Shown in pieces: positions 3,838-32,230 of a stretch of 64,000 bases of DNA. Every line of letters begins with the position of its first letter. The first letter of the stretch is position 1. The stretch comes from Schmidtea polychroa. Lineage: Eukaryota. Location: positions 90,520,001 through 90,584,000 of the forward strand of contig CM097886.1 of NCBI GenBank assembly GCA_044892525.1. The letters run 5' to 3'. The notes under the pieces are model-generated. The model saw only the letters and a list, made by a program, of their open reading frames with translations. It made no database searches and was not told the DNA's origin. A program made the translations under genes and the position numbers.

Positions 3838-4074
3838 TCAATTTAGACGGCGTTTTCTCTTTGGTCCACGAATTTTAAAAACCACATTAATACTAATCCA
3901 CATGATGACCAGAAGTATATAAGACACCACCAAAGACAGAACAATGTGCTGCCACATCCTGAAAGGTTCTACATCAAAAACGACATATCTCTCCCGCTCT
4001 TGCATTGCTTCATCATACGTTATAGCGTTGATTATAGAAATGAAAAAGCAAAAAATTATAACAAACAGAATCAT
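3838..4074 (-). CDS. Small secreted/single-pass membrane protein, family member 1 (78 aa)
   Basis: ATG at 4074 (MILFVIIF...); hydrophobic N-terminus, TYDEA, YVVFD..F...H, ~28-aa hydrophobic helix, N..FKIRG + basic tail; aligns with four other ORFs in the window. Confidence 0.8.
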   Translation of the reverse strand: MILFVIIFCFFISIINAITYDEAMQERERYVVFDVEPFRMWQHIVLSLVVSYILLVIMWISINVVFKIRGPKRKRRLN

Positions 4075-4360
4075 TTTTTTTGCACTTACAAGCTCAAATA
4101 ATAAACCGAACAATTAAAACAAATTACTATATGGTGTGGGTCAAATCTTCTTATTTGCTGCTTTTTCAAGATTAATTTGCACACAATTTACGTTAAACAA
4201 TCACGACATTTTGACCAATTACTTTTACTAAAAACACTTATTATATTTGTTTTTCAATTCACAATGAAACATAGAACAAAAATTTATTCATTAAAACAAC
4301 AATAATAATAATAATAATTCTATGGAATACGAAATATATTTACATGGCTAATTAGTCAGT

Positions 4361-4603
4361 CTAGCTAACGTAGCTCCTTGTTCTCTTCTTCCGTTTTCTG
4401 CCGAAAAGCTTGAATATTAAATTGACACTGCAAAATATTGATATCAAAATGGCATAGGTCGTTGCTAAAGCACAAAACAGATGGGCTAAACCATTGAACG
4501 ACGAAGTGTCAAATCTAATTATTGAAGAGTCTTTCTCTCCATCTTGATAAGTGAAAGAAGAAATTCCATGGAATACCGTCAAAAGTAAGAATAATTTTAA
4601 CAT
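4361..4603 (-). CDS. Small secreted/single-pass membrane protein, family member 2 (80 aa)
   Basis: ATG at 4603 (MLKLFLLL...); same motif series (IRFD..SF...H..ALA..Y.IL...SVNLIFKL.G.KRKKR); tandem with member 1. Confidence 0.8.
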   Translation of the reverse strand: MLKLFLLLTVFHGISSFTYQDGEKDSSIIRFDTSSFNGLAHLFCALATTYAILISIFCSVNLIFKLFGRKRKKRTRSYVS

Positions 4604-4966
4604 TTGAAATTGAAATTTACAAATACGCACATTTCTCCTTTGGTCCGTTTAAATAGAATATTATAAACACCACCTAATGGCTTATAAACACACGTTTGGA
4701 CTTACCGAATGGCTTGACTGTGTTTTCAGTCTTACCTTTGGACTTTTAAAACCCAGTTCTTTCATAATCATGATTTTATCTACAAATATACCGTTAAAAT
4801 TAGTTTTATCAATAATTTTTCACATAAAACTTTTTCAACTTTTTATAGAATAGATTGTAAATTTCATCTGAAATGAAAACAATTTTAAATTGAAAATTAA
4901 TTATTGATATAATAATTTAAAAAAAAGATAAAAATAATAATAATAATGATAATAAAAAATTGAATT

Positions 4967-5601
4967 CAGTGAAACCACCTTATAAAGGACACCCACTAAA
5001 AAGTAGACTTTTCTTAAAGGTACAAAAAAATGAAAATGAGTCTCATTTGTGTTTTTAAGGGGTATTGACTATTTATACAAGGTACATCACTTTAAAGTAC
5101 ACAATTTTATTTATATAATTTAAAAATAACTCAATAGAAAGAATATCAATATACTTATTTTAAATATCTTATATTTTTTATAATCTTTAAAATTCTATTT
5201 AGTGGTTTATTAGTGAAATATATTTATAATATTATTAAAAGGTTAAATATTATTAACAATTAAGTTGTTATTTATGCTAAAACGAAGGGATTAATTGAAG
5301 AAGAGCTTCACTTATTGCAGTTTAATGAGAAAGTAAGAAAAGTGCAAAAGAAAAACAAAAAGCAAACAAAAGTTGATGAATTCTTAATTAAAAATAATTG
5401 TAGTATCCTTTATATTTAATTTTTATATCTCCTTTCATGACAAACAATTATTTGCTAGAATTTTAAACTTTACGACATTTACCCTCAATATTTATTGAAT
5501 ATGGTGTATCAAACTTTTTTATTTTTTAATAATTTTATTATAATTACCCCCGAAGAAGAATTGTTTGCAAATAGGGTGTACTTTATATGGAGATTTTACT
5601 G
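4967..5601 (+). mobile_element. Non-autonomous pogo/Tigger-like DNA transposon
   Basis: Imperfect ~30-bp TIRs CAGTGAAACCACCTTATAAAGGACACCC / CAGTAAAATCTCCATATAAAGTACACCC, TA at right flank; internal remnant ...KKNKKQTKVDEFLIKK* resembling pogo transposase C-termini. Confidence 0.65.
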
Positions 5602-5624
5602 TAGTAATTTATTTATTAAAATAT

Positions 5625-5697
5625 GACTATGAATCAGTAAACATATTGATGCTTTTTTTGATATTCACGAATTTTCGGCACTGCCTTTTTCAAGTGA
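5625..5697 (+). repeat. Dispersed ~72-bp motif, copy 1
   Basis: GACTATGAATCAGTA...GATATTCACGAATTTTCGGCACTGCCTTTTTTCAAGTGA; recurs at 7043, 14768, 27961. Confidence 0.85.
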
Positions 5698-7042
5698 TTT
5701 TAATCAATTTTTTTACTACTTTACTTTACTAGTTAATTTTTTAATAAATACGCTGTGAATTGAAAAGAAATCAGTGGTGAAAATTGAAACAAGTTTTTAT
5801 ATTCGAATAATAGTAATTTTATTGTAATTTCAGAAACACATTGAAAATGAAGCCTAAAAAAATTTTGGTATAAAAAAATTTGTTTAAAAATTTTTAAAAA
5901 AATATTTACTCTAGATTTCTGCTTTGATCTCTAAAATTGTAATTATAATTAAAATTATAAAACTTTAGCTTATATTTCCAAAAACAAGAAAAAGAAATTT
6001 TTAAAAATAACATAAAAATTTACATTTAGCTATCAAATTATTATCCAATCAAAAGGCAAATAATTCAGATAATAGAACATATTGAAGAAGGCCATTTCCT
6101 AGTGTAAAATTCTCATTTTTTGAAAACCCAGTGAATAGAAAATAAAAACATTTGAAACGTAATCAACATATAAACGAAACGAAAATATATTTGCGAAAGT
6201 GCCTGTGTTTAACTCAGCTAATAGTTATAAATGGACTTTTTTCAACCTAGGCAAAAGCATAACATATAAACCACAAAAGATTCATATTCTTTGAAGACAT
6301 CGAGGACTTTATGTAATTTTATTCTAAATTTCAGGCATAGCCGTTTTGAACTACCTATAAATACAAAACTCAAATTCTACATGTTGGAGGTCAAGTATGT
6401 TAATATACAATACAATTTCACGGTATTTAACTTCTTTTATCTTCATTATAAATGTCCATGACATTGAGACTTCCCTAGAAATTATTAATTAGTTAATTAA
6501 AAATGTTTATAATTGAAGAATTCAATTTTTGTATTTTGTTATAATCACTTGCTACGCTACTTGACAATGTTAAAGTTTTCAAACAAAAGTTATTATTTGT
6601 AAAAATCTAATAGAAAAAGAAAACTTTCCTCTCCCTTCAAAATGCAGAATATGTTCAACAAATAAAGTTGTTATAAACAAATTTCAAATTGATATCGTGT
6701 GGCGCGTAGTACAAAACAATTTATACTCGCTACCTGGAAAAATTTAATTAAGTTAAAATAATCAACGCGATTAAATAAATTAATTAACAATTTAATTAAA
6801 CGTTACGTAAATGTAGTTGTTGATTGATGTCGTTTGTTGAATTTCTTATTTATACATTACAACATTGAAAGAATTTCCTCAGGAGATTTTTTTAAATAAA
6901 ATTAATGAGAAGAGAAATATTTTTTTGAATTAATAGCATTTAGAGTATTTAGAATTTTTCATTATGGATATTTCTAAATACAAAAAGGTAGTGTTATTAG
7001 AACTTTTTTCCCAATTTCACCACTGATTATTTTTTCCATTGA

Positions 7043-7135
7043 ATTTATTAAAAAGAGAGCTTGAATACTATTAATCAGTAATATATCGATGTTTTTTGAT
7101 ACTCACGAATTTTCGGCACTGCCTTTTTCAAGTGA
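7043..7135 (+). repeat. Dispersed ~72-95-bp motif, copy 2
   Basis: Same core; shares extended left part ATTTATTAAAAAGAGAGCTTGAA with copy 3. Confidence 0.85.
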
Positions 7136-7438
7136 AGGTAGTGAAGGCACCAAATGTTTCTTATAAATTGTTTGTTTTAATTGATTCGGGGATTTTGAAG
7201 ACATTTATTGTAAAAGATTATTTCACATTGCAAATTTCAATGTTCATAATTTACCAACTGATTTATATTCTTCTCTTTAAGATTTTCATTTGCATAATTT
7301 TATATCAAAATACAAAATTTTACCATTATCAATTAATAAAATTATAAATTCAAATTCGGTTCCATTTCGAATTAATTTGGTAAATAACTTCTATTATATA
7401 ATTCAGCGTTCAGAGCTCACATTGTCACTAATACCAAC

Positions 7439-7690
7439 ATGTTGTTTCTTGCTATTTTTAAATGGATAATTCTTTTTCAAACCATGGTAGTGGTGAAGTG
7501 TATTACCCTTGATACAGCTTTGAAGGAACCAGATATTTATATCAAATATGATCAAACGAATTTTAGGATTTGGTTCCATATTGGTATATCCTTGGCCATA
7601 TGCTATGCGATTTTAGGGACAATATGGAGTCTCATCAATTTAATATTTAAAATCCGAGAATTGAAAAAAGTTGGAACTGAATTAGATTGA
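7439..7690 (+). CDS. Small secreted/single-pass membrane protein, family member 3 (83 aa)
   Basis: YIKYDQTNFRIWFHIGISLAICYAILGTIWSLINLIFKIR matches family consensus; intronless ATG-to-stop ORF. Confidence 0.8.
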   Translation: MLFLAIFKWIILFQTMVVVKCITLDTALKEPDIYIKYDQTNFRIWFHIGISLAICYAILGTIWSLINLIFKIRELKKVGTELD

Positions 7691-9298
7691 TGTTAATATG
7701 TGAAAATTATTTGTTCATAAATATTTAAATGCTTTGCTTAATTTTATGCTAATTTGCTTATATTTTAATAGTTCTTACTTGTGAATTATTTTAATTTTTA
7801 AAATGTTTAATTTTCAAAATCTTCAGAACATCGAACTAAAATTACACATAAAATTAATTGTTTATCTGATTTTAATTGTTTTTTTAATAGAAATGTTTCT
7901 ATGAATAGTTAAATTTAGAATTTGTTTTAAAGTATATATTTACTTAATTACATTTATGCAAAAATTTAAATTCGTATTAGAATATAAAGTTAACTTAAAT
8001 AAATTAAGTTAAAGTTAAAAATAATCATTACGTTTTGAAAAATAAGAAGAAATAAAACAAAATTTAAAAAAATTGATTAATTAATCAATCAATGAATATT
8101 AATTTTATTTTTTTCTCCTTATATAGTTATTTTCTAGTGATTTCTCGACGAAAAATTAAACATTTTCAACAGCAAGAGGCCAAATACCTTACCAGTTTCT
8201 TTAAGTCTCTTTGCTCAATTTTCAATGAATCAATCCAAATTTTTCATATTGTTTTTTATACAATTAATTTTTTTGTTATTTTTAATTGAATTTAACATCG
8301 GCGCTAGCACAAAAATTAATAAGAAATATTTTTTAAAAAACTAAAAAATTGATTAAATAACAAAAATATTACGATTTCTTCAATTTCGTATAAAATGGAT
8401 TTTATATTTCAGAATAATTATTTTTTAATTTTTATAAAGTTGGTTATACAGCCTCTAAAATTCTAATCATAATTCTGTAAACCAAAATATCTCACCTGAA
8501 AGGTCTTAGAAAATAATTAAAATTTTGAAGGTGTCTTTTGAATTAATTGAAAATAAAAACTTATCCAGGTTGGTAAACTCAGTAAATAGAATCTGTAAAA
8601 TGATACTTCATTCATCACCTTTCCGAACGGTAATATAATCGTCTTCCTATACAATGAACCTATTTTTGAAGTATAAGACGTCATTCGATATTATTATCTA
8701 TTCATATACATACACTACACTAATTCTTAGCTAACCCTTACCTGACTAATGTAATCATCGTTTCTATTATACAAAATACTATTAGCATAATTAATAATGC
8801 GTGCGCATTCTTTTACGGGTTTATGAGGGGCATTCGTTTCTTGCACAAGGCTTCCTTGTTCTATCTCATTCGAGACTTAATGTGTAGGAAATAGGTTTCA
8901 TTTTTCTCGACACCAGCGTATTTTTTCAATGAGCTGTAGTAGCAGTAAAGCAGTTCAAAGTAAAAAAGCTACCACGAAATTAGATTCTAAACCAAGGATG
9001 TTTAACCTGCGTCCCGCACATAGATTGACAAATATAAATCATTCCAATGTTGATGTTGTGTTTCATAATTTTTCTAATCCTAATGCAAGATTATAATATT
9101 ATATACAACAATCCCTCGCTTAACGTGTAGTGCCTCTGACTAGCACTTTTATCTATTTAATAATTGAACTAAAAATATATTATTAAATTAATTAAATTAA
9201 AATAAAAAATTAAAAACGATTGTTTAAATAATCCTTTACTTTTCACTTTTTTCGAAAATCATCATCAAATTCAATTTAAAAAATCATCAAATTCAAAC

Positions 9299-9730
9299 AT
9301 GTCTAACGAAGTCACTGAAGTTGTCACTGAAGTCGAACAAACTGAAGAAGTTGAAGAATCATCAAATCGAGTCAAAATCAATAGATCAAATATGCCAGAA
9401 ATGCAGGAAACAGAAACCTTTGTCTTTTTAACAATGATATCTCTGATGATGGTCAAGACCTTCAACAATGTTAACTACAATTAATTCTTTGTTCAAATTA
9501 ATTTTATGTCCCTACAATAGGTGTCCGAAGTAACAAAGGTAAATGTTCTTCTTTCTTTAAAAACAGTAAAAGTTACATGTATAATTGTCCTTAAGACTTT
9601 TATTAAGACATTTTCATTTATTAAATTTATATATAATATATTAAAAATGTTCAATTATTATGTTGCTATATTTTTCTTTTTCCACCAATCTCCCAAACCC
9701 AAAAACCAAACTTTAATTAATAAGAAAACG
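9299..9730 (+). CDS. Possible small spliced gene with acidic N-terminus; faint resemblance to dynein light chain LC8-like proteins
   Basis: ATG ORF 9299-9484 with coding-like composition (MSNEVTEVVTEVEQTEEVEESSNRVKINRSNMPEMQE), GT...AG candidate intron ending 9519, then ...TCIIVLKTF. Similarity to LC8 (IKNADMSEEMQ, WHCIVGRNF) is weak; exon structure uncertain. Confidence 0.25.
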
Positions 9731-11069
9731 CGCAACATTATTACACAACGTTATATTACACAGTTTGCATCTTGCTTTGCTGTTGAATTTTTCATTTCCA
9801 ATATAGCTTTCGCTGACCTAAGTATATATTTTTCGCCAATCTGCATTGTAACTGCACTTCCTTCTCTTTGTTGTGGAACCACCTTCTACCTCACTCATTT
9901 CTTAGCTAGAATTACTTTAAATTAATTTAAAATTATTTGGCTATTAAAGTTATACAGACCCTAGTTGATTGATATAAAAAAACAAATTTAATATTTAATT
10001 TTTCACTTAATAATTCAAACTTTAAATACTTCAAACTTTAGATTAATTTATCACTTTACTACACCAGCAGTAGTCTAATATTTTGCATTTACTATAAAAC
10101 TACAATTTTTATAAAATAAAATTTTCCATTTTGAATTTCAAATTTTTCAAAGCGTTAGGAGAAATTAACCGGATACCTGGCAACCGTGACAGTGACAAGT
10201 GTAATTGTGATTAAAATTGAAGAAAGTGTTTTGTGTTGGGTTTTGCTTATTCGATTGCAATAATAAAGGACACGAGGAGGCAGAAACTAACCGAGTTGTT
10301 AAATAAAAACCCAACAAATACAATAAACCGAATAAATCAAAAATAGGTCAAATTTTAGGTAAAAACATTAAAATTTAAGCTCTAAATAGATAATTATTTT
10401 TAGGATAAAAACTAATTTTTAATAAAAAGAAAACTATAGAAAACAAATCACATGTTAATAAAGAGCCCTATAAAAGAAATATAAAAATCTGAAAATTGTG
10501 TTACTCAATAAAATAATGACACACGAAAAATTTAGTATATAAGATCGCTCCTGATTGAACAGAAACACTTCTACTCGTAATTGTGAAATACACACTTGAT
10601 AAAGGTTGTGCGGAAATATCGTGTATCGTATACATTGTCTTCCAAATATTATTATTTAAAATTATTGAATATTAATTTTAGGTATTTTATTCTGTTTATA
10701 GAGAATAACAATATCCTTTGTTTAGGATTTTATGAAATGAAGCTATGCATGAGCAATATGAACAGAAATTTCCAGTTTAAAATAATTTATGATAATTGTT
10801 TGCTTACGATAACATGAACTTCAAGTAAATAATTATATTGACCTACCATGAATGGTTAACCCGCAACAATGGTGGCTAGAAAGTTGAAAGCATAAATTGT
10901 CCATGGAGTGATTTAGAGCTCCAATGTTGTAAGAATATGAATATTTTAATCTTAATGAAGAGCTTTGCCCTGGAAAATATCCATTGCAAGTGGATTTTTT
11001 GGAAGAGGGAAAAATCGAGCATAGATGTTTACGATATAATATCCTATCTGAATTGTCCATTGATCGTCC

Positions 11070-11320
11070 GTAAATAGATGTGTGGACTCCAGGCCAACAG
11101 GAATCCTCAACTCTAATTTTTTTTGGACGAATAGGTGTGTACCTTTTTAGGGAGCCCCTACACTTTTTTGACAACTCCCTATAAGAATTTTATGAATTTG
11201 TTTTAATCGGTGATTACATAATTTTTTACAATTTGTCTTATTCGACGATTATATAATATTTTAATTTTTGTTTTAATCTTCAATTATGCAATATTAAAAA
11301 ATTAATCGCAAATTACGTCA
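11070..11320. repeat. Unassigned dispersed repeat, homologous to 52415-52630
   Basis: Shared GATGTGTGGACTCCA, TTTTTGG.CGAATA, CTTTTTAGG.GA.CCC, TTGTTTTAATC.GTGATTACATAAT, ATTATG.AATATTAAAAAATTA. Confidence 0.7.
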
Positions 11321-11364
11321 TCAATTTTAATTTTTCACCTTGAAAAGATTCCATTAGAAAGTTA

Positions 11365-11795
11365 CGATTGTTTGGATATGCTTGTCATATAATGAAATCA
11401 ATAACAGTTATATCTGTCGGATTTGTGAAAATAACGATATATTGAACATTCAAGTTACGTGTCCTGTGACTCCCACCCTGATAAAACAGATTTTGAGCTA
11501 TAAAAATAACTGTTACACCTTGATATTGGGCTATTTTTGTAAATAAATTATTAAAATCTTTTTCTTTGTTAGATTCTTGATATAAATCATCAATAATAAT
11601 TGCATCGACCAGTTTCTATCAAATCCTTTTATTATTGTCATTTTTTATTTACAAATTTTTTTTGTGTTGAACCATTTTCGTCATCAGCACCCCTACGCCA
11701 ATGAATTTTATTGAATTTTGACTTGAACATTTTTGATTGTAATAATTTACAAATAAATAAAGTTTTGCCACTACCACTTGGACCTACAATTATTT
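11365..11795 (-). pseudogene. Decayed Polinton/Maverick-type packaging ATPase (A32/FtsK-HerA family)
   Basis: Manual minus-strand translation: IIVGPSGSGKTLF (Walker A), AIIIDDLYQE (Walker B), LFTKIAQYQGVTVIFIAQNLFYQGGSHRTRNLNVQYIVIFTNP, QAYP; one frameshift and stops, so absent from the ORF track. Confidence 0.85.
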
Positions 11796-13032
11796 AATTC
11801 CTAATATAGTTTATGGTTACCAGTGACTTATTATTATGTTTGTCGCCTTAGTTATACATCTCAGGAGTATTAACACTTTAGGAATAAAATATTATTTTAC
11901 TATTACTAATACATCGTCTTTTAAAGACGGTCAACCATCATTATTATTACTATTAATATTTTACTCCATTATAGATGTTTTTTGCGATTAATACCTTCAT
12001 TACAGGTATTTAATCACACTAGTTATTATTATTTTAATAAGTTATAAAGATTATGTGGTTTTCAACATCATTGGTATTTCGTTCCAGTGTCATTACAGCT
12101 ATATTAAAATTAACTTATAAAAATGATTGCGCCTAGGTTGGGATTATGGCCATCACGACCGAGTATCGAGGTGGTGAGGTAATCATTTACTATCATTGGA
12201 TATAAATTATGATAAATTACTTAAAATATGAAAACATTATTTCTCCAACAATTTATAGTGGTTTCAAATGACACGTTCTGATTTTACCATAGTGACCACA
12301 CTAGGATGATTGTTGAGTAACAGTCATATATAAACTAGTAAACTTAAATTGGAAATTGTCAACTTGGTCAAAGAGCTAAGGAGATCCAATCAGATTAATT
12401 CTAATCGGTAAACTCCGAAATTGAATCAGATTTATTTATTAATCGATTGAAGTTGTAGATTTATTTGTTGAATATATTTGTTCTCATTGAAGTCATGAAA
12501 TGCGGAGCCACGGGAGATTATTACCTTACCATAATTAATTAATTTATAATTAATTAATTTATTGCACACAACACAATAGTAAGCCTAAGAAACATTTCCT
12601 GGGGAAATTAGTTGATAATTTCAATTTTTTTCCCTTTTCAAGTCCATAATAAAAACAAATCATATTTATAACATTTATGGTCTTCTTAAAGGTTAAGATT
12701 TGGAATTTGTAATTATTATTTTACACCAATCAATCAATATTGTTAATAATTTTTTTCACTCAAGTAAATAAATCAAGATCTCGAACTCAATAAAACATCA
12801 CAAAGTTCTTATTTTGAAATAAATCTGTCAGACATTTGTTTGAATTGAATTTGATACAGATCTATATAGAATTTGTACCAAATCGACATCGAATGAAACA
12901 GCAATGCAATAATTTCCATATCGACCAATCAAAATCCCCGCACACCGGCAAATCTCATTTCATAGAGTTATTCCAAATCATTCTATAAATATAAGATCGC
13001 TACAAGTTTTACAAGTGATTATTAATTCAAAA

Positions 13033-13281
13033 ATGCCGACTAGATTAACATTGATTTTGGTTTTCGGTATTTTATATTTTGTGTCAACGGCAAAATCTTT
13101 GACATTGGAAGAAGCAAATAAATCACCAGAAAGATTTATTAAATACGATCGATCGACATTCAAAATTTGGTTCCATATTCTTTTATCTCTCCTCATATGC
13201 TACTCGATTTTAGTGGGAATTTGGGTCAGTGTCAATACTATTTTCAAATTGCGGGGATCGAAGAAATCGCGGCGAATGTGA
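13033..13281 (+). CDS. Small secreted/single-pass membrane protein, family member 4 (82 aa)
   Basis: ATG at 13033 (MPTRLTLIL...); TLEEA..PERFIKYDRSTFKIWFHILLSLLICYSILVGIWVSVNTIFKLRGSKKSRR. Confidence 0.8.
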   Translation: MPTRLTLILVFGILYFVSTAKSLTLEEANKSPERFIKYDRSTFKIWFHILLSLLICYSILVGIWVSVNTIFKLRGSKKSRRM

Positions 13282-13439
13282 CCAATGAGCTTTTAGTATT
13301 TAATCCTTAACGACTGTGTTTATTATTATTATTATCATTATTATTATTAATGTTATTATCGTTATTTGAATTGTTTTTAGAGTTATAATTGTCAAAAATA
13401 TGTTATTTAAATGCATTAAGTTTATTTAATTATTTATTA

Positions 13440-14495
13440 TTCTAATAGAAAATTGCCAACTAAATCAAAATATAACATTGCTATATATTTTGACCGTTTA
13501 ACAGACTGTCATGCTAGGAATCGTATTAATAATAAATAAATGAAAATAAGAATATCCAAACAAATTAACAAATAATAATTATAATCAAATTGTATCAAAT
13601 TAAAAAATATTTTAGTAAAATTTTAAAAATTAATATTTTAAATTTTAAAAAAAATCGATCTAAACACATTGATCAAAAATATGTGTTGGTATTACCTTAT
13701 TCTGAAGGTTTCAGAGAATTCAAACATAAAACCCTTAAACATGTAGATAAGACTATATTTATGATTGTTTCAACCTCTTGCAAAGTTGATAGCATGTTAA
13801 CTAATAAGTTTCCAACTCCAATTGGTCTGTGTTCAGAACTCGTGGATCAATTTTTATGCAATTGGTGTAATGCCCCATACATTGGCGAGACTATCCGTTA
13901 TTTCTGCACTCGAGTTCCTGACCATTGCCGATGGAAGGGATTAACCAAAATTAGTTATCATTTTAGGAAGTGTACCAAAAATAAAATAAGTATTTCTGAT
14001 TTTAAGATCATGTAGAGTAATTACTGGGAACGAGTAACGTACAAGGCTTTGCTAATTAGATCTTTAAATCCTATAACTAATATTCAAAGTGCGCAGTCTA
14101 CAGGGATTTCGAAAGTATTTAAATAATTTAACTTGTACATTTAATATTTGGGATGGTGTTGTTGTTTGTTAAATTTTTTGTATGAAAACAACTTTTAATT
14201 TTAAATTAAATTTAGTTTTTATAATAATTTAAAATATTTTTTTTGTATGACGATGTTAACAATTTTGTGATTGTTTTTTTAAATTAAAATAATATTTTTA
14301 TGATTTTTTAAAATTTTATTAAAATACTTTTTAGTTTGAAACAATTTGATTATGATTATTATTTGTTAATTTGTTTGAATATTCTTTTCTTCATTTAGTT
14401 GTGATTAATACGATTCCTAGCCCGAAGAAGACTGTTAAACGGTCGAAATATATAGCAAAATATATAATATACTTAGTTGCCGATTTTCTATTATA
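13440..14495 (+). mobile_element. 5'-truncated Penelope-like element (GIY-YIG remnant) with inverted pLTR arms
   Basis: ORF remnant LVDQFLCNWCNAPYIGETIR...R..DH, then ALLIRSLNP.TNIQ; ~90-bp inverted repeat at 13440-13530 and 14403-14495. Confidence 0.8.
14417..14456 (+). ncRNA. Minimal hammerhead ribozyme motif in PLE pseudo-LTR
   Basis: CCGAAGA-A-GACTGT/TAA/ACGGTC-GAAA-TATATA-GC: C(C)GANGA core, 6-bp stem II, GAAA, palindromic ATATAT stem III; only 2 bp of stem I remain. Confidence 0.6.
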
Positions 14496-14767
14496 AAAAC
14501 TTTTCCTTATTTTTTGATTATTTATTATTTTAATTATATTATAATTTTGTTGTCAAAACTATTGTTATAGATTTTCTTAAATATTTTCCAACTGATGACA
14601 ATTTGGAAGGTATTTTTCGGTAAGTTTTTGACCCAGATATTGGTGGCATCAAGGTTTATTAAACTGCTTTGCTCCCGAGCGTTATGAAGCTTCATTACCC
14701 ACTGTCTATATGAACAAAGGACAATCTAAAAATAACAAAACATAATTATGTAATAATTATTATAATT

Positions 14768-14861
14768 ATTTATTAAAAAGAGAGCTTGAAGACTATAAAT
14801 CAGTATTATATCGATGTTTTTTGATACTCACGAATTTTCGGCACTGACTTTATTCAAGTGA
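14768..14861 (+). repeat. Dispersed ~72-95-bp motif, copy 3
   Basis: Same core as copies 1, 2, 4. Confidence 0.85.
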
Positions 14862-15418: not shown

Positions 15419-16052
15419 CATTGGTTCCCAAACTTATTTGATCTACCGCCCCCTTTTCCACAAAAAATATTAATCAGCGCCCCTGGATTTTTTTCAATTT
15501 GAATAGCATTTAAGTAGAAATATAAATAGTTACCTATTCTAAAAGAATCTGATTGATCAGAAAAGGAAAGTGATTCCCAGATGGGGAATAATTAACAAAT
15601 TTGGAAAGTGATGATCAAGATAGGTAATGATGGTACTAATAAGGAAGTTAGTGATTAGTGAAAAAGGAGGTTATATAAAATATAAATATCTCTTTCGACG
15701 CTCAATCGTATTGCGCAAGTTAGGACAAGTATCAATGAACCAGCCGATTGCTACCGGATTGCTCCAATAGCGTTATTTAACAGAAACTTGGTACAACTTG
15801 ATTGCGTACGGCGTGCGGGCTATCCTACTAAATCTATGTTAAGTAATTTAAGTTTTTATTCCATCATTCAGGGTAGAAATATAAACAATTATTCGTTATT
15901 GTGTAGTAGGTAGGTTTAAACTTTAGTGAAATTTAAAATATAAAGTAAATGAAATTACAAATCTACCATTGCCCTCTTAACCCACGTCAACGCCCCCCTC
16001 TAGGTCTCAAACACCCACAAGGGGGCGTTATCGCCCACTTTGAGAAAGACTG
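15419..16052. mobile_element. Non-autonomous hAT (Charlie-like) element
   Basis: Ends CATTGGTTCCCAAAC ... CACTTTGAGAAAGACTG; 8-bp flanks CTCTAAAC / CTCTAAAT (7/8). Confidence 0.75.
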
Positions 16053-16347
16053 CTCTAAATATATTCCACTTGACAATATTTTTTCAACACACTATCAGAA
16101 TTAAACGCTACATTTTACAAAATAAGACACATTGTGAATGTAGTTCACTTTGTTACATCCATTAACCTTTTTGGTAAAATTCATTGTTTCAAAATGTGTT
16201 GGACATAAATTAAAATCAAATTTGCCTCACTCGAAATGTAAAAATTATTTTAAAAATATCTTTTATCTCTTTCACCATTTATCTGAATTCAATTTCAATT
16301 GCCGAAAATTTGCATTAAATATAAAACAAAATATTAATCTATTATCC

Positions 16348-16679
16348 CAGTGATGCCCACAATATTTCCAACAAGTGTCAATTTAAAAATTCAAATTTTT
16401 TATTAAAATCATTCATTAATATTATTGGCTAATTTTTCAAAATCAATTGGATCATCATTCATCGCTCTTTTAAGTTGAATATTTAAATTTGAATTTAATA
16501 ATCGATTCCTGTGTTTATTTTTAATTATTTTCAAAGCTGATATCTTTCGATTGTAGATTAATAATAAACAATAATTATTGATTTCAAGGTTAGGGTAATT
16601 GTTTCGAAAACTTTAATAAATATAGAAGTTAAGAGTGTCAATAGAAAGCCTAAAGCGTGCTACACTTTGGGGACCACTG
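16348..16679. mobile_element. hAT MITE
   Basis: Ends CAGTGATGCCCAC ... CTTTGGGGACCACTG; 8-bp flanks TATTATCC / TATTATAC (7/8). Confidence 0.7.
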
Positions 16680-17433
16680 TATTATACGCAAAGAAATTAA
16701 ATATTAAAGTATTGAAATTTCAATTTATAACTTTTTAATTTCTTAAAATTAAAGTTGCTAATAATAGAAAATTAATATTTTCGATATGGTTAAACACATC
16801 GGTTTAATTAAATAATAATAGTCTAGAATTCTACATTTAAGATAAACATAAAATTCATTTGCATAATGTTCATAAGCTTAAGTTGAGTAAAAATTAATGA
16901 AATACAATGACAGTGAACCCACATAGACAAGATAATAACTGAATATACAAATTTCTCAAATGATAAACTGCTTTTATTGAAAGTTTTAAGTAGTGAAAAA
17001 TAAATTAAACTTTAACTAAAAGGTTCATTAATTTTAAAAATTAAATCGCCCACAGTCCCCTTCAATGAGGAAGTGAGTCCCAACACTTTTTGAATTGGGT
17101 TGTTCCACATGTTCAACACGATTTCCTAATTTCAAAAAAATATGATAAAACTTTGTACAAAAGTATAAAGTGATGATTCCTGGGAAGCAGCATTAATTTA
17201 ATGTTAAACAATTAAATTATTTTATTTTTTTGATATATTCTTTGCAGCAAAGGGCTTAAATTATCATTTAATTTTTAACTTTGTACAAATCTGTTAATAG
17301 AATCCACAAATGCAAATGATAAAATTATATAATATATCTACAGATAGGAGATGAGTGGCTTACATTTTTTGTACAATTTTTTCATTTAGTATCAATCTCA
17401 TTATCTTTTACTTACATACCATATAGAGTATTC

Positions 17434-17830
17434 TTAGTGATTCGAGTGAACAGAAGAAAGAAAATGCATTGGAACTTTAATTTCAATCAAATCATCTACA
17501 GAAAACTGTATTCCAATAACTGAATCGTTGAATAATTGTTCATAATCCAAATCTCCAACCGAAACTTTATTTTCCAACTCCAAAATCTGAATAGGCGATC
17601 CAGTTGCAGCACATAGCCAATATATGTTGGGCGAAAAGATAAATTTTTTAATAATATCACACATTTCTAACGCGCATAAATGTCGTCCTTCAGATAAATT
17701 AAAGTTCCGTCCCATGATCCAGGCCATGCAAATTGACCATCATTTGACATAACAACATCACTTTCAAAGTTATCCCACATAATCATAGATTTATCCCTTG
17801 ATGCAGAAATAAGAAATAAATAAATTAGCA
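17434..17830 (-). pseudogene. RACK1: Internally deleted RACK1 (GNB2L1) WD40 copy
   Basis: [34 protein letters not shown] and [10 protein letters not shown]...DII..F.FSPNIYWLCAATG match RACK1 WD1, WD2 and WD5/6; intervening repeats missing and frame broken. Confidence 0.85.
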
Positions 17831-18689
17831 TTGTAAGTTATCATTAGTTCTCTGATCATTAATTTTCGTTTTAGTAAAACTTTTCTCACCATTTCCTTTT
17901 AACCAATCGGGCCACATTTGCCTTGGACTACGTTGTACGTTATTTTTGGACAAGCATTGATTGCTGTCATGTCCCATTCTTTGGATATTATCACACTGAA
18001 TCGGAATTGGGCTTCTTTCACCAATATTAGATACTAGGAAAGGTATTGATTATTTGAAGAAAGTTCAAGAGTTCATTAAATTCTAAAATGGAAATGTTTT
18101 TGAAATGAAGAAAAGGTTATTTTCTGTCACAATTGATGGGGCTTCGTCGCTGCTTTTAGTTTTTATGGCGTCATTGTAAATAACATGTAAAAACACAATT
18201 TGGAATAATGTATTAGTGGTTGTTCATAGTGTTTTTTATTTCTTCACATTTCTCCATAGTTTTGAAGCATCCAATTTCCAGGAAAAGTCAAGGTTTTGTT
18301 GTACACTAATTTCAGTAAAAATGACTCTCTCGACGAATTCCACGAGCATGACAAACACGAGACCTTTTCCTTGGATTGGTTGCTTTTCGGTTGGAAATAA
18401 TCTTGGAAACATTCATAAAATAAGTTGGATGTGTATTGCCGATGTATTGCAGGGATAATGAAACAATATCAAGCACGTCAATAAAATAATTAAATGTTCT
18501 TAATTATATATGGTTTCATTTTATTTACACGTGTCTCATTTCCTGCAAACATTTTATGATTTCTTCCAAATTACAAATATAAATTTGATAATAGATTTGC
18601 AATTCTCTATTTAAGAAATATCGGATTATCCCATATGTATAATTAGTTTATTTTTATTTTATGTTATCTAAAATAGAAGTAATGTGACC

Positions 18690-19619
18690 CAGGGACGTAG
18701 CTAAGAGGGCATAGGTGCATTAAATTATAAATTATCAAAAATAAATTAAGATTGAAGTATTTTAATTAAACCTTTATTTTGGTTTTGTTGTGAGAATTGT
18801 ATCAAAATAAAAAAACTAAAGAAAAAGAAACGAAGAACTTCAAAATTTTAATAACCTAATTGATTTCTATCAAAAAGATATTGATTGTAACAAACTCTTG
18901 AATGAGTTTAAACTGTGATTCAACAAATTTGAAGAAATTAAAATCAAACCGACTACTGCTGTAGATAGAAAAGCAATTTGTGATCCAATTTTTTATAAAA
19001 ATATTTATATTCTCACAATATTTGCTACTTTGCCGGTATGAACTTGTACAGCAGAGCGTTCTCTTCATCACTTAAATACCTGAAGTCATATTTAAGAAAT
19101 GCCATGGATAAAAAAAAGTTAAACGGTTTGGCTTTGTTATATATTCATCAAGGCATTAAAATAAGTCCAGATGAAATACTTTCTGAATTAATGAAGGGAC
19201 AAAGACGGATTAATATTATATTTCAATATATTCTTTGTAATATGCATTGTTAATAATTAAAAATAAATTTGTTAACCCTTTGAGGGCGACGGGCTCAACA
19301 TTTTTTATTCCCCCAAAGGTGGAATTTTGCCATTAAAAATGAATTTTCCCTAAATTGACGTATAATTAAAAATGTGACTATTTTGACAACTATTACAAGC
19401 TGTAGAATATATTGGCGCAAACTAGAAGTTTTTGGCATTTAGTGGACTAGAGTCGAATTTCGCCCTCAAGACCAAAATAAAGTTGTGCGACTGTAGTCGC
19501 ATGGCGGCCTCAAAAGGTTAATTATCTTAGAATATTTTTTTCTATTTTTCCGTGTCAACTTTTAACATTGCTCGATGAATTGCAGTAATTAATAATTTTG
19601 CCCCCCAGGTGAAATCCTG
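18690..19619 (+). mobile_element. Decayed hAT element with C-terminal dimerisation-domain remnant
   Basis: IFATLPV.TCTAERS.SSLKYLKSYLRNAM...LNGLALLYIH (hAT dimerisation motif); ends CAGGGACGTAGC ... GAAATCCTG; flanks ATGTGACC / GTGTGACC (7/8). Confidence 0.8.
19276..19517 (+). mobile_element. piggyBac-type MITE (242 bp), nested in the hAT element
   Basis: TTAA on both sides; termini CCCTTTGAGG ... CCTCAAAAGG; near-identical copy at 48812-49051. Confidence 0.9.
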
Positions 19620-20030
19620 GTGTGACCCACCTTGCAAATAATTTTGTCAGAAAAATGAGTCATCTTAAAGAACAATAATCTCTCACACTCTCATCGATGA
19701 GATTTTTAAAATTAATCAAAATAATTATTTGTACGCACGTTGAAAGATAAAAACGATATAAGACATTCTGGTTGGATAAATATATCTCATTGGTTGTCAT
19801 GGCAACCATAAGATAATAAAACAGGTCGAACATAAATATTACGTAACTAACACATATAAATCCATCGCATAATGACATATCAAATTGCTTCATTGACTGA
19901 CAAATAAAAAACCACAGAAAATCGATTAATTCGAAAAAATAATAACAATAAATATTGTCAATTTATCAAACAAACAAATATTTTTATTGATTACATAAAT
20001 GCGAAAAAAATCTCCAGCTTTGGTGACAAA

Positions 20031-23000
20031 TCATACACATTTCTTCTCGATGCAAGACTTTCCGAATTCTTTGTATTCCTGTTTTGAGGTCCACATCTGC
20101 TGGAATGTTCCCTGAAGGTTTGTTGTCAAATGTTCACATGAAATATCCCATTCAAATATAATACCAATGATCCCATAACAGAGCCACCGATCCAACTGGA
20201 ATAGCGACGCTCAGCGGATATATTGACGAAATTAACTTTCAATCTCATCGACTGAGGAGTTTTATTATTCAAATCTTTCTGTAATCTTTCCGGGAATCCA
20301 AATAAAAGACTGTTTCCACCGACAATTAGCACATTATTGTAAAGATTCTTGGTCAAATGGAATTAAGAATGATTTAAAACCAAAAGAAGAATGAACTACC
20401 GATCTGACATCCATATCACACATACTAATACTGCTAGATACGATGTGGCTCATTGACAACATGGAATTACCCATTGACTCCTAATTATGTAATTATTTAT
20501 TGCAAATGATTCTCAACAATGATTTACTGGTAATATTGACGGATCAAATAACGCTTCTGGAATCTGAAATCTCTCATGACCAACATCAATACTGTAGCCA
20601 TTAGGAAAGTCATAGGATACAGTGGGTAAATTATCAGCTTGACTAAGAATAGAACATTTTTTTAAAAAAGAAGAAAGCTACAATATTAAACTACGTTTCA
20701 TTGTACTTGTCATCAGCTACTTGATAAACGGAAGCTGCAAAATCTTGCATTAAAGACTGAAAAGAGAAAGATCTTTATATAAAAACTGAAAGATTCTGCT
20801 CATATAAAATAAAGAATTAAAAATTTTTCCTATAGATTTATATTTTCATTTTATCTTTGTGAAGTTCCTAGATCCACTCCAAATGCTTATTTCCTTATTC
20901 TTTAATCTATCTATATATTTTCTCTATGTAATATATTGTAATTTTGAATTATTAATTTCCTTCAATCAATAAAAATAATATTAATAAATAAATCGATTCA
21001 TAAATTATCAAATTATACTTGATGAAATTAAATATCTATTTTTGATTTTAAATTTTTAATACTTTATTTTATATAATTAATTTTCAATCATAAATTACAA
21101 GAACAAATTAGGAGCAGGAAAACGCAAAGAAAAAATTGATTTGAAAGAAAAAGAAATAAGAATTAAAGAAACCTAAATATTTATAGAGAGCACAAGAAAT
21201 GCTAAATCAACTTTAACAAATTCTGGTGACAATTCCAGAGAAAATAATTAACAGCAAGTTCAAGTTACCCATCAACCAGAAGAAAATACATTTGCAGTCA
21301 TAAATGAAGATCAGAAAATCAAATGACTTCGTGACACATATAAATTGATTCTTATGATGTAAGTGTAATTGAAACGGAATATTGTACATCAAGTGAAGAA
21401 TGCAATACACTTAGGTTCATAAATGCACCCCAGCGTATTTCCTAACGACATTCATGGATATAAATTTCCAATTAATTTACTTAAAATAACTTTTTTTTGA
21501 ATTTTCTAGTTTGGAGCGCTAGTAAGTACGCATCGATTTGCTTTTCTTATAGACATTTAAATAAAATTTCTACTTGTCACAAATTGAATTTATCTTCGAA
21601 ATCTGAATATTCAACAGAAATGGGAAAAAATTATTCGAAAAAAATTCCAGAACATCATAACAGAGTTAACCACAAATTAATTATATGGATTGACAGAATT
21701 TAGAGAAAATATTTTCCAAGACAATTGTAAATTCGTTTCTTCAGGAACACGGATGGTCACAAATATTATATATAACTTTGGGCGTGAGTAAATGTATATA
21801 AAGGTAAAAAAACATCTGATAAGTGATTGCAGAATTTTAGAATTAAGACTATTTATTAAAGTCACTAGGACACGGTATTAAAAAAATATTTGGATAATGT
21901 AAAAGCTCAAAAACACTGCAAAATCTTAAAATCGATCCAAACATAAATTTGAGAGGTAAAAGGCGTAAATTTAGGACAATATTCTCAGATGAAATTGGCG
22001 ATGACTATTAAGATACAGTTTTTTTTAAGTTAAACTTGGTGATATCAAGGTCTTAATGAAATATGTTGTTCATTCGGATTTCTGTGGAATTACCTAGAAA
22101 TTTATGTTGACCATTTAATACAAAATGGTAATAGTTTATATAATGAATATACTTCAGCAATCACCAAAGAAATTTCAGATGAAATCGTTACCGTGACTCA
22201 AGAGATCATTTAGCATAATTGCAACAGTGAAAAATATATTGAGATCTAATTTTTAGATTCACTTTCAAATAGATTTTGAAGTAGGTTGATGTGAGCTCAC
22301 TGAGTTATCGCGCATCTACATGGGCGATAATATATGAATCAATTTATGTTATATTTCTTGCAAGATTATTATTAAAGTTATATATATATATTTAACTACT
22401 TTTTATTTTCTAACTAAAGTGAGGTCACTTTTAATCGCAATCTTTACTATAAAAATTTACCAATATTGATTTTATAGTACATTAATGTGCAAAAAGTCCA
22501 ATTTTATGTTTTTAGATTTTTAAATTTTTTTAATTTAATTATAACAAAAATATTCGATAAAGTGTTTGATTTTTATGTTATTTATTATATATTGATTTTT
22601 GAGTGCTGTTTGCAATTTAACTATAATAAGACACTTTTTATTTATATAACTAAAGCAAGAACACTTTTAGTCCCAATGTGCACACTGTACTATAAAAAGT
22701 GATAATTTTGATTTTATAGTGCATAATTATGCAATTTTTATGTTTTTGTTTCATCGCACTATAATGTAAAGGCTTGAGATTTTTGAAAATGTCTTTTGGC
22801 AAAAAAATAGAATTTTGAGATTGATGTTTTTTGACCACTTTTTCGTATCTCGTTGAGATTCGGGTGGTGAAAATGTTCTAATTTAATTATAGCAAAAATA
22901 TTCGATTAAGCTTTTGATTTTTATGTTATGTGTTATATATAGATTTTTGAGTGCAGTGTGCAATTTGACTATAGTCAGAGACACTTTTAGTCCCAATGTG

Positions 23001-25480
23001 CGCTCTGAATTATAATGTGCTAATATTGATTTTATAGTGCAAATTTGTGCAGAAAGTGCAATTTTTATGTTTGAGATTTTGAAAATGTCTTTCGGCAAAA
23101 ATAGATTTTTGATAAACGATTAAGCATTTGTTTTTTAGATCGTTTTAAAGCCAATCAGATACTTGTCTAGTATAGGGGAGTGATATCACAAAAATGATTA
23201 TATTTCTAAATAATAGCATCCTAACTAGTAGGCCTATATTAATGCCATCTCATTCAGACTGTTAGCTTTGATTTGACAGCCTTTGAAAGTCAATAATTGC
23301 AAAAAGATTATTTTTGCGAGGGAAAACCATCACATAAGTCGAAGACAATTTGAAGAAATATTACATGAACTCTGCTGCTTCCATTTTATGGTCCGTCGAT
23401 GTGATCGAAACAGCACAAAATACATTTCGCACTCAACAGAAATGGTCAACAAAATCCATGACAGTGTTGGTGGATTGCAGAGTAAATGTTAAATAAATTG
23501 TTCAGGTGGTAAATATCTCGGGTAGACGCGTACGGAACGTCCTACACCAACTACTTCCAGCGTATCAGTGCAATCGAATATCGTTTTTGTGGAGATTCAT
23601 GATTGCTGATGGATGGAAATAATGGAACAATCAAAGGTATCATATTGATCGACTAATTGCAAAAAGGAAAAAATGAACACATTAGAGTATTATGTTACAA
23701 TTTTAAACCAATTAAATTATGAATTGATGATTGGTAGTCTAGAACATAGCCACGCATTCATGCGCTTTTGTGACGAAATTGATTGATTTGTGCTACGAAT
23801 TATTGTCAAAACCCCCTTATTTGACGGCTTCCTATGGCACTGCTCTCTCTTCCCAAATATGAAAAAAATGGCTGGCTGGGAGGAAATTTTCATCATTTAA
23901 AAATGTCATAGCAGTTTTAATTGGTACTGAGCAGAGAGCATGAGGAAGAGTCACTCGTGTTTGATAAGGCACGGTGATAAATTTAACAAATTAGCATCCT
24001 AATTGCCCATCTTCGTCAAGTTCCTAGATCCACCTGATTTCCTTAATCTCCAATCTATCTATATATTTTCTCTAGGTAATATATTGTAATTTTGAATTAT
24101 TAATTTCCTTCAATCAATAAAAATAATATTAATTATTAAATCGATTGCTAAATTATCAAATTATAATTGTTAATAGAATTAAAATTAATTCTGACCATGG
24201 GAATAATAAATATAATAATAAATCAGATATAATAAATCTTTTAATTACATTTTAACTATTCTCGTTTCTTTTACAAACCTTAATAATAATTTATATAGAA
24301 AAATAAGTTTATTTTCATTTGTATCCATTTATATTACTGATTATTTTTACTCAGTAATTATTTTTATAAATTATTAATATTAATGAAGTTGCAAATACTC
24401 ACTTTAACCATATAGCGATTAAATGAATCGGTAACTTGTGGCAAATTCGGTTTCATCGTCCATCTAGGCTTTTCTCCCGATTTAACAAACTCCTTAATTG
24501 GTTGTCAATACTTCACTCGAATCACGGTGAAAAAACAATTCTACTTTACTGGCAACTTTGTAAATTGGGACCGGCTCTATTTTTTGAGCTTCGAGATACT
24601 TTTGTGTTTGTCTAACTATAAAATCCCCGGCTAAAGGAGATCGCATAATTCCTTGTGTCAATACGTGACCATCATAGACTGGCACAGTGGAAGTATATGT
24701 GGATCCACTATCTATAACGAGCCCGGTTGCACGTCCATTAGAAAAGCAACTTAGAACGGCATTTTTTGCAACAAATGCAGCTGGAACCTATTTAAATGAA
24801 AAATCAATTTTATTATAACCATTTTAATAATAGCTCGGATTGGATATCATATAATTATACATTTTTATTATGTTTAGATGAATAAAAATAAATGATTAAT
24901 TCCAACAATTGAATGAATTGAAAAGATTTTTAAGACAACTAATTATTACATCAAATTTTTCAAATAATATCTCAGCAAGTTTCTCCCGTTTGGCTTTAGT
25001 ATTCCAAGCCGGTTCGGAAAATAAAATCGGATGGCAAGTGGTTTCATAAGGAGTTAAGTTTCTCAGCATATGCTCAACAATTTTTTCAAACAAATCCCAA
25101 TCATCAACTAAATAATTAAGTTACTTTAAGTAATTGTTGATTAGCTTACTCATGCAATCTTTCATTAATGGTAGCAGTTCTTTGCCCCGAACTGGAAATG
25201 TGACATTATTACCAACAACATATCTCTTCGATTTGGATTCATCTAATACTTCAATGACACCAGCTACACTAGGGATATCTAACTGGATTTTAATTTTGAA
25301 TTATTTTATTTTTAGCGAAATTTAGTACTTTTGGTAAATCTTCACCGGCGAACCCTCCTCTCAGTGAATATGATCCGAAATCAAATACAAGAGCTCCGAC
25401 TTCATCTATTATATAAATAACGATTAATATATTTAATTGAATAGAAAATAATAACCTCCTCCATGCATTGCTCCACTCAT
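20031..25480 (-). CDS. ACTL6A: Actin-like protein 6 / BAF53 / Arp4 (SWI/SNF, INO80, NuA4 subunit), about 11 exons
   Basis: Spliced translation [34 protein letters not shown] ... [27 protein letters not shown] ... [22 protein letters not shown] ... [37 protein letters not shown]; GT-AG introns mostly ~43-110 nt, one of 3.65 kb (20757-24402). Confidence 0.95.
20862..21017 (+). repeat. ~150-bp direct repeat, copy A (copy B at 24018-24165), in the large ACTL6 intron
   Basis: AAGTTCCTAGATCCAC...AATCTATCTATATATTTTCTCTA.GTAATATATTGTAATTTTGAATTATTAATTTCCTTCAATCAATAAAAATAATATTAAT present in both. Confidence 0.9.
22430..23115 (+). repeat. Imperfect internal duplication (~350-bp period)
   Basis: AAAATATTCGAT.AAG..TTTGATTTTTATGTTAT...GATTTTTGAGTGC, ACACTTTTAGTCCCAATGTGC and TTTTGAAAATGTCTTT.GGCAAAAA each occur twice. 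Confidence 0.7.
23230..24016 (+). mobile_element. Decayed mariner transposase
   Basis: Fragments [15 protein letters not shown] (N-terminal HTH region) and PY...LAP...[20 protein letters not shown] (YSPDL region) with stops/frameshifts; boundaries approximate. Confidence 0.7.
24018..24165 (+). repeat. ~150-bp direct repeat, copy B
   Basis: See copy A at 20862-21017. Confidence 0.9.
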
Positions 25481-26100
25481 TATTTAATTTTTAAATATAA
25501 CCAAAATAAATTTAAATTGAATAAAACAAACAACCAAATAAATAATTCATAATTTCAAAGAAAAATTTAAAGAATATCATTACCAGAGTAGTATTTTTAT
25601 ATTAATTTCAAATTTAGTAATTTCTCAATTTTTATTTAGTCTGTAATTTTTTTAATGTGATGTTCACTATCACCTTTATTAACTTGTGTAAAAATTTTAC
25701 GGTTTGTAATTAAAATAATATTTATAAGTATTCGAACATTCCAAAATATCACAATTCCATATTATCTTGTAATGTTAAAAAATTTTTAAGACTTAAATTT
25801 ATAATTATGTGTTTTATTATTTAGGTCGTTTAAATCGTTAATATATAGAAATATATTAATTATATATCAAAATTATATTTTTAACATGTGACTTTTCTAA
25901 GCAACTAACTTAACTATTTAATTAAGTCAATAAAAATAATTTGAATAAAATATATATTTAATATTACATAAATCGACGTATTAATAAAATTAATTTAATA
26001 AATTATAACACTATATACATTTTTATCTAAAAAATCTAATTAAATCTAAACTTAATGTGTTTTTTGATGAAATCCTATTTTTCTGACAATTGAAAATCTT

Positions 26101-26349
26101 CTAATCATAGGTTCTGGAAATCCTTTTCTGTCCATGTAGTTTGAAAACCAAGTTTATCATAGACCAAAGAAGTATTAAAATGCTATATGAAAGTAATAAG
26201 GCCAATCCGACATGTAGAAAAGTATTGAAAGTAGAATCATCATAACGAATATATCTATGCCGATCTTTCTGAGCCTCCTCGTAAATCACACTGTACACGG
26301 AATGTATACAAATAATAAACAATATTGTAGATTTGAAAAAAACACCCAT
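26101..26349 (-). CDS. Small secreted/single-pass membrane protein, family member 5 (82 aa)
   Basis: IYEEAQKDRHRYIRYDDSTFNTFLHVGLALLLSYSILILLWSMINLVFKLHGQKR matches family consensus. Confidence 0.8.
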   Translation of the reverse strand: MGVFFKSTILFIICIHSVYSVIYEEAQKDRHRYIRYDDSTFNTFLHVGLALLLSYSILILLWSMINLVFKLHGQKRISRTYD

Positions 26350-32022: not shown

Positions 32023-32035
32023 TGTCTTCCCCCTA
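32023..32035 (-). promoter_or_regulatory. Polypurine tract
   Basis: Minus strand TAGGGGGAAGACA immediately before TGTTGGGG start of the 3' LTR. Confidence 0.85.
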
Positions 32036-32081
32036 ACAAGATTTTCGTCCCGAAAATTAAAGCGGTAAAGACAAGACAATT

Positions 32082-32230
32082 NNNNNNNNNNNNNNNNNNN
32101 NNNNNNNNNNNNNNNNNNNNNNNNNNNNNNNNNNNNNNNNNNNNNNNNNNNNNNNNNNNNNNNNNNNNNNNNNNNNNNNNNNNNNNNNNNNNNNNNNNNN
32201 NNNNNNNNNNNNNNNNNNNNNNNNNNNNNN
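32082..32230. other. Assembly gap (N run) in the 3' UTR of the Gypsy element
   Basis: 149 N. Confidence 1.

Follow-up and report, generated by a model that had tools for sequence, protein, structure and literature searches.

A flatworm-restricted family of predicted type I single-pass membrane microproteins with five diverged members at one Schmidtea polychroa locus

The stretch of Schmidtea polychroa DNA analysed here (contig CM097886.1, positions 90,520,001 to 90,584,000; the window, 64 kb in all) carries five short and related coding sequences, spread over 22 kb. The corresponding open reading frames (ORFs) had been pointed out in an initial annotation made from the sequence alone, and all five were found at exactly the coordinates and on the strands given there. 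They were recognized from the list of ORFs together with an alignment, and are set out below with their lengths (in residues, counted from the ATG) and with the E-values obtained when the window was scanned with two hidden Markov models (HMMs), the first made from the five copies themselves (window HMM) and the second, independent one made solely from proteins of other species (other-species HMM).

Copy 1: 3838-4074, minus strand; 78 residues, coding sequence uninterrupted; window HMM E 9e-39, other-species HMM E 4e-23.
Copy 2: 4361-4603, minus strand; 80 residues, intact and the most divergent of the five; window HMM E 1e-32, other-species HMM E 7e-20.
Copy 3: 7439-7690, plus strand; 83 residues; window HMM E 2e-35, other-species HMM E 2e-22.
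Copy 4: 13033-13281, plus strand; 82 residues; window HMM E 5e-38, other-species HMM E 4e-27.
Copy 5: 26101-26349, minus strand; 82 residues; window HMM E 2e-38, other-species HMM E 2e-25.

The length of these ORFs is by itself weak evidence that they are genes, since bases 1-32000 of the window contain 11 ATG-initiated ORFs of at least 78 residues; it is homology, as judged by profile comparison, and not ORF length that lifts the five copies above chance. A six-frame scan of the whole 64 kb with the window HMM gave exactly five matches (E 1e-32 to 9e-39), and no extra copies, fragments or pseudogenes were found in the window, the next-best piece having an E-value of 0.35. The other-species HMM matches the five copies at E-values of 4e-27 to 7e-20, with its best other piece at 0.24. 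When the five are aligned over their whole length there are ten invariant columns, including a His, a Tyr, an Asn and the Phe-Lys pair that closes the membrane segment; pairwise identity in the mature part is 31-53 %, with copy 4 the closest partner of copy 3 in the window (53 %). We regard it as very probable that all five are genuine membrane-protein genes. Their products are not present in a collection of 5.8 billion proteins, so that these genes have apparently escaped annotation until now.

Copies 2 and 1 share a strand and are 286 bp apart, copy 1 being the downstream one; the spacer includes a hexamer resembling a poly(A) signal, which at such AT richness carries no information. Copy 5 is situated just upstream of an actin-family gene, again on the same (minus) strand. 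The coding part of this neighbour is divided among at least three exon ORFs whereas the copies are uninterrupted, in keeping with the earlier observation that they lack introns while the neighbouring gene is rich in them.

An exhaustive profile search over all proteins, of any length, returned 46 cluster representatives with E-values below 1e-3, including 12 below 1e-10. Thirty relatives were looked up; each one with a named source is from the Platyhelminthes, and the rest are from unnamed read-archive or metagenome contigs. At least 13 genera are represented (Macrostomum, Schistosoma, Fasciola, Clonorchis, Paragonimus, Taenia, Hydatigera, Mesocestoides, Rodentolepis, Spirometra, Dibothriocephalus, Protopolystoma and Cichlidogyrus), Schistosoma by seven species. 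Macrostomum PAA72310.1, Schistosoma CAH8513218.1, Fasciola THD21102.1, Clonorchis GAA55276.1 and Taenia solium KAL5960645.1 are true homologues (E 1e-5 to 1e-16), and these database proteins from other flatworms equal the window copies in length and layout; some relatives, such as P0017 (182 residues), carry a long low-complexity cytoplasmic extension. A word-indexed protein search with a 37-sequence profile gave six family members only, all of them already known. As far as the named relatives go, the family is thus restricted to flatworms, both free-living and parasitic. The suggestion that it is lineage-specific stands, but has to be widened from this genome to the entire phylum Platyhelminthes. 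A role in host interaction, which had also been proposed, is unlikely as a general function because free-living flatworms have several copies, as seen in Macrostomum and in the genome analysed here.

Multiplication of paralogues has occurred repeatedly, with five members here and others in Spirometra, Fasciola, Macrostomum and Mesocestoides. Macrostomum lignano has at least three genes and Mesocestoides at least four, while Fasciola hepatica and F. gigantica have two each; the two Spirometra copies are on one strand and 8.6 kb apart, indicating that local duplication recurs. Neither Macrostomum nor Spirometra has an intron within the coding sequence; Schistosoma rodhaini has a single short one. 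The relatives are annotated as hypothetical or unnamed proteins with no family defined, apart from stray and contradictory automatic names ('Epithelial membrane protein 1', 'Protein S-acyltransferase', 'Cytochrome d ubiquinol oxidase subunit II' and 'G_PROTEIN_RECEP_F1_2 domain-containing') that most likely result from spurious matches to the hydrophobic helix. Literature searches by topic, by UniProt accession, with the phrase 'epithelial membrane protein 1' and by run and sample accession gave nothing relevant to the family, which is so far undescribed and unnamed.

We note that six read-archive runs (SRR14765262-73; contigs L006-L011) contain near-identical contigs of 1.6-1.9 kb and roughly 50 % G+C, each with a family ORF (P0036, 71 residues) near its 5′ end and no other convincing ORF, so that they look like mRNAs with a long 3′ untranslated region. 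The P0036 subfamily does not have the conserved mature N-terminal motif, and the source of these contigs may lie outside the sampled flatworm groups.

The initial annotation had argued that copies so strongly diverged, yet all open and of equal length, imply selection, and a comparison of substitution types upholds this. By the Nei-Gojobori method, the proportion of synonymous differences (pS) is 0.58-0.93, which is saturated, and that of nonsynonymous differences (pN) is well below it, at 0.23-0.51. For copy 5 and its orthologue from another species (contig L001), pN is 0.23 and pS 0.77, with 77 % nucleotide identity over 153 nt and 73 % amino acid identity in the mature part. An exact ratio of nonsynonymous to synonymous rates (dN/dS) is not obtainable because dS is saturated, and the comparison indicates purifying selection on the copies. 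All five are open, and their coding G+C content is 31-35 % as against 24-28 % locally. The best DNA match between copies, that of copies 3 and 4, is 73 % identity over just 100 nt; the coding regions hardly match as DNA, and the duplications are thus old. The distance between window copies (31-53 % identity) is about the same as their distance to the members found in other flatworms (about 40-46 %).

The earlier proposal had allowed for the copies lying inside a mobile element. When each copy was compared with the others by blastn together with 1.5 kb of flank on either side, no shared flanks were found beyond low-complexity matches, and on this ground the copies are not passengers of a mobile element. 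None of the transposable-element pieces in the window is associated with a copy, except for an ORF at 13590-14015 (plus strand), about 300 bp downstream of copy 4, which resembles the GIY-YIG (Penelope-like) ORFs of the window; this likeness was judged by eye, and the ORF has no Pfam match. These data bear on the alternative that the five ORFs are non-functional, either chance ORFs or passengers or remnants of mobile elements. The density of ATG-initiated ORFs of this size (11 per 32 kb), the abundance of transposable elements in the window and the short distance between copy 4 and the GIY-YIG-like ORF would all suit such an explanation, but it is effectively refuted by the homologues in at least 13 flatworm genera (E-values down to 1e-27), by a pN far below pS, by the dissimilar flanks and by the lack of broken copies.

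The encoded proteins share a simple layout, consisting of a predicted cleavable signal peptide, an acidic ectodomain of about 24 residues, a hydrophobic core of 23 residues and a basic tail of about 10 residues, with a mature chain of about 60 residues. The conservation values given here refer to the 37-sequence alignment A2, in the numbering of copy 5. The signal peptide is predicted to be about 17 residues long in copy 1 and to comprise the hydrophobic residues 1-20 of copy 5; at the predicted cleavage site, 35 of the 37 sequences have Ala, Gly, Ser, Cys or Thr at position -1, and 36 have a small or aliphatic residue (Val, Ala, Thr, Ile, Cys or Gly) at position -3. The mature N-terminus is marked by Thr22 (32/36), Glu25 (29/36), Ala26 (26/36) and Pro30 (23/34), and the juxtamembrane segment by an aromatic residue at position 33 (32/37), Ile34 (28/37), Tyr36 (28/37), Asp37 (26/37), Phe41 (27/37) and Asn42 (26/37). 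Within the transmembrane helix, His46 is present in 30 of the 37 and replaced by Asn, Asp or Gln in the others, position 50 is Ala or Ser in 36, Tyr55 is found in 31 and Leu58 in all 37; there is also a partly conserved Gly (23/37). Beyond the helix come a Lys or Arg at position 70 (28/37), Gly73 (29/37) and an Arg-rich tail that includes Arg79 (26/35).

The spacing from the His to the Lys is in all five window copies exactly the 23 residues of the hydrophobic core, which places the His at the interface on the outer side. The Asn, by comparison, lies four residues before the Lys and thus near the inner interface, and is kept in 9 of the 37 sequences, a subset that resembles the window copies. 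The description of the family as having an invariant membrane His and Asn therefore applies to the five copies, in which both are invariant; family-wide the His is kept in most members and the Asn in few, and both residues sit at the ends of the core. The mean net charge is -2.1 for the ectodomain and +4.6 for the tail, values that fit an N-out/C-in topology by the positive-inside rule. An AlphaFold2 model of copy 5 made with alignment A2 (predicted local distance difference test, pLDDT, 87) has helices at residues 2-16, 23-33 and 43-73, the last being a long helix with pLDDT values of 93-97, and an extended segment at 34-42. The two features that define a type I single-pass protein, a signal peptide and one helix oriented N-out/C-in, are thus both predicted from the sequences and the model, and the residues at the cleavage site, the single hydrophobic core and the charge pattern all agree with the earlier view of single-pass proteins with a signal peptide. 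On these predictions the family is one of type I single-pass membrane microproteins.

Conservation is concentrated at the start of the mature chain, in the juxtamembrane segment and in the half of the helix that would lie in the outer leaflet (the His, the small residue four positions later, the Tyr and the invariant Leu). A conserved face on one side of the helix is not statistically supported, since 1599 of 5000 shuffles reach the observed moment, and the idea of a single conserved stripe was dropped for that reason; it is the entire outer half of the helix that is conserved, on all sides. This bears on the quite improbable alternative that the proteins form a small homo-oligomeric pore which, like a viroporin or holin, would conduct cations or protons and be lined by the conserved His and other polar residues. 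A single helix containing His, Ser or Thr, Tyr and, in the window-like subset, Asn would be suitable for such a pore, and there are noise-level matches to a Vpu transmembrane peptide (E about 1) and, for one relative, to a phage holin model (E 0.012). These matches are at chance level, however, the His is at the outer boundary of the hydrophobic core and not inside it, the polar and conserved positions do not lie on one face, and the most conserved element is outside the membrane.

The family was not recognized when it was first noticed, and it is not recognized by any curated library either. Pfam was scanned with the five copies, the 37 members of the family, 10 additional relatives and 11 mature parts, and no match reached the curated threshold for full-length or mature sequences. 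The sub-threshold matches (DHHC, HemY_N, holins, TMIE and Ac45-VOA1_TM) are mutually inconsistent and were taken as transmembrane-helix noise. Similarly, when solved structures in the PDB were searched at E-values up to 10 with three family profiles (A1, A2 and A3), no relevant chain was found. The matches obtained were to a phosphodiesterase helix (E 0.02-0.5), Vpu peptides (E about 1) and the V-ATPase c′ subunit (E 4-6), all of which were rejected as chance. The first is a repeatable local motif match of 28 residues between profile positions 34-62, which cover the juxtamembrane and outer-helix motif of the family, and a helix of the phosphodiesterase catalytic domain (5vyd_A and 7d7p_A), and is regarded as a coincidence, this being a soluble helix and the family one of membrane proteins. 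Foldseek, run on the PDB with the AlphaFold model as query, had 0 matches, as expected for a single helix.

A faint likeness to the transmembrane segment of ATP6AP2, the (pro)renin receptor, had been offered as a lead, and it was not borne out. The C-terminal fragment of ATP6AP2, considered here as the human and insect protein, is of similar size to the family members and likewise has a short outside piece, one helix and a short basic tail; the window family differs, in a comparison made with profiles, in being without a large ectodomain (it has only about 24 residues), in having its own signal peptide and in forming multiple paralogues. The Pfam family Renin_r gave no match at E up to 10 with 25 of the sequences, and is absent both from the nine families matched by the mature parts and from the 25 commonest of the 48 families matched in the 37-member scan. 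The three profiles matched no solved chain of ATP6AP2 or ATP6AP1 at E up to 10, and the any-length exhaustive search found no relatives with long ectodomains. The transmembrane domain of Ac45/Voa1 (PF20520) also consists of a single helix followed by basic residues, but its match is to copy 1 only, at 12 bits (E 0.18) against a cut-off of 25 bits, and the family profiles give it no support.

These comparisons are relevant to the improbable alternative that the family is a housekeeping component of the secretory pathway or endomembranes, or an assembly factor, such as a V-ATPase accessory protein of the ATP6AP2 or Ac45/Voa1 type or a subunit of an endoplasmic reticulum (ER) complex, that has diverged beyond recognition in flatworms. 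Retention throughout the phylum under purifying selection is what would be expected of such a component, the size and layout are similar to those of the membrane-bound C-terminal piece of ATP6AP2, the Arg-rich tail could serve in ER retrieval, and there is the faint Ac45-VOA1_TM match of copy 1. That match, however, concerns one of about 48 sequences and falls far under the cut-off, no Renin_r match is listed and no solved chain of either accessory protein is found, and it is rare for a core housekeeping subunit to persist in the form of five paralogues with only 31-53 % identity.

Two families of known auxiliary subunits resemble the microproteins in plan. TMIE (PF16038), an auxiliary subunit of the TMC mechanotransduction channel, begins with a signal-like N-terminal segment, followed by a short stretch outside the membrane, a single helix and a polybasic tail; the only match, though, is that of the mature part of copy 1 (13.4 bits, E 0.069, against a cut-off of 27 bits), one of about 48 sequences, and no solved TMIE chain was matched by the three profiles. 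FXYD proteins, regulators of the Na,K-ATPase (ATP1G1_PLM_MAT8, PF02038), are type I microproteins of comparable size with an acidic and aromatic juxtamembrane Tyr-Asp motif and a basic tail, and in both cases there are several diverged paralogues per genome. The likeness is one of layout only, with no detectable sequence relationship, and we consider it very unlikely that the family is a true but highly divergent FXYD homologue. Such homology would account for the shared plan of signal peptide, short ectodomain, one helix with a Gly (23/37) and basic tail, and for the Tyr-Asp pair (28/37 and 26/37) that follows an aromatic Tyr or Phe (32/37). The strict F-X-Y-D motif is not present, however, because it is Ile (28/37) that stands two residues before the Tyr and the aromatic three before, and the Asp stands farther from the helix; FXYD is not among the Pfam matches listed and no solved FXYD chain was found at E up to 10. 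To our knowledge FXYD proteins are known from vertebrates only, which we also count against homology.

A chain of this size appears too small to act alone, and an auxiliary subunit is its most likely role. Because conservation is highest at the N-terminus of the mature chain, in the juxtamembrane segment and over the outer half-helix, we read the proteins as subunits of a multi-pass complex, and conservation of the outer half on all sides, with no one-sided moment, fits a helix buried in such a complex. We propose, tentatively and with some reserve, that family members may be tissue- or partner-specific auxiliary subunits of a multi-pass membrane complex. The mature chain would expose its acidic segment of about 24 residues, the first half of which would form a short helix, outside the cell or in a lumen, followed by the transmembrane helix with its core bracketed by the outer His and the inner Lys, and then by the strongly basic cytoplasmic tail. 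The juxtamembrane segment and the outer half-helix would pack against a multi-pass protein, for example an ion pump, channel or transporter, while the Arg-rich tail would fix the topology and might also be an ER-retention signal, hidden once the complex has assembled. By analogy with subunits of the FXYD, KCNE and TMIE type elsewhere, the five old and diverged paralogues could supply tissue- or partner-specific versions.

Of the classes that had been suggested, 'channel/pump regulator' seems to us the most plausible. A fuller version of the proposal, which we think rather doubtful, would have the family consist of flatworm-only auxiliary subunits modulating a conserved ion pump or channel, an independently arisen counterpart of FXYD, KCNE and TMIE with five specialized paralogues here, present in every major parasitic flatworm group and absent from their hosts. 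Several points weigh against an auxiliary-subunit role. The partner, the localization and the expression of the window copies are all putative, and expression in relatives is suggested solely by the transcript-like contigs described above, in six runs whose read type is unconfirmed. There is no sequence or fold tie to a known auxiliary subunit in the Pfam, PDB-profile or Foldseek comparisons, a basic tail and an interfacial His are ordinary in many single-pass proteins, and the conservation pattern would also suit a homo-oligomer.

Small membrane proteins are routinely missed or mislabelled, as the contradictory automatic names of the relatives illustrate, and with the family defined, annotations in many flatworm genomes could be put right. 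Few features are common to planarians, flukes and tapeworms and lacking in vertebrates, and a conserved membrane component restricted to the phylum would be added to them. If its members are true pump or channel subunits, they would bear on flatworm membrane physiology and would give a conserved machine a surface specific to the parasites; for the present, this is a solid but ordinary lineage-specific microprotein family of an ordinary structural kind.

The other features of the window are as follows.

20126-25093, minus strand: multi-exon actin-family (actin-related protein-like) gene.
28150-28593, minus strand: fragment of a Pif1-type helicase of the Helitron-like kind.
30943-44964 (approximate), minus strand: long terminal repeat (LTR) retrotransposon-like element.
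49044-49412, 54068-54460 and 54866-55210, all minus strand: reverse transcriptase (RT) and GIY-YIG endonuclease pieces of the Penelope-like kind.
50224-52215, minus strand: ORF of 663 residues without a Pfam match.
56351-56604: about 17 copies of a 15-nt unit.
59895-61752, plus strand: C2H2 zinc-finger ORF followed by a protein-primed type B DNA polymerase ORF (Pfam DNA_pol_B_2).

No RNA genes were found in the window by Rfam and tRNA scans. Three exon ORFs of the actin-family gene match positions 322-384, 158-204 and 76-128 of the Pfam Actin model. The LTR element, which has a G+C content of about 39-40 % in a background of 26-28 %, is bounded by direct repeats at 30943-32023 and 43885-44964 (both plus) that are 99 % identical, and there is a gap of Ns at 32082-32230, at the inner edge of one of these repeats; between them, at 32415-43785, are long ORFs of the gag, protease-RT, integrase and other types. 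Equal HMM noise scores on opposite strands at about 53.7-54.1 and 55.4-55.8 kb suggest an inverted duplication, and the C2H2 zinc-finger and DNA_pol_B_2 ORFs together suggest a Polinton/Maverick-like remnant. The 663-residue ORF has about 39 % G+C amid AT-rich DNA and contains about 14 tandem repeats of 48 nt (16 residues), rich in Ser, Ala and Asp, at 51029-51710, as well as a His/Gln run. The 15-nt repeats at 56351-56604 give rise to an artificial ORF of 111 residues made up of repeated pentapeptides.

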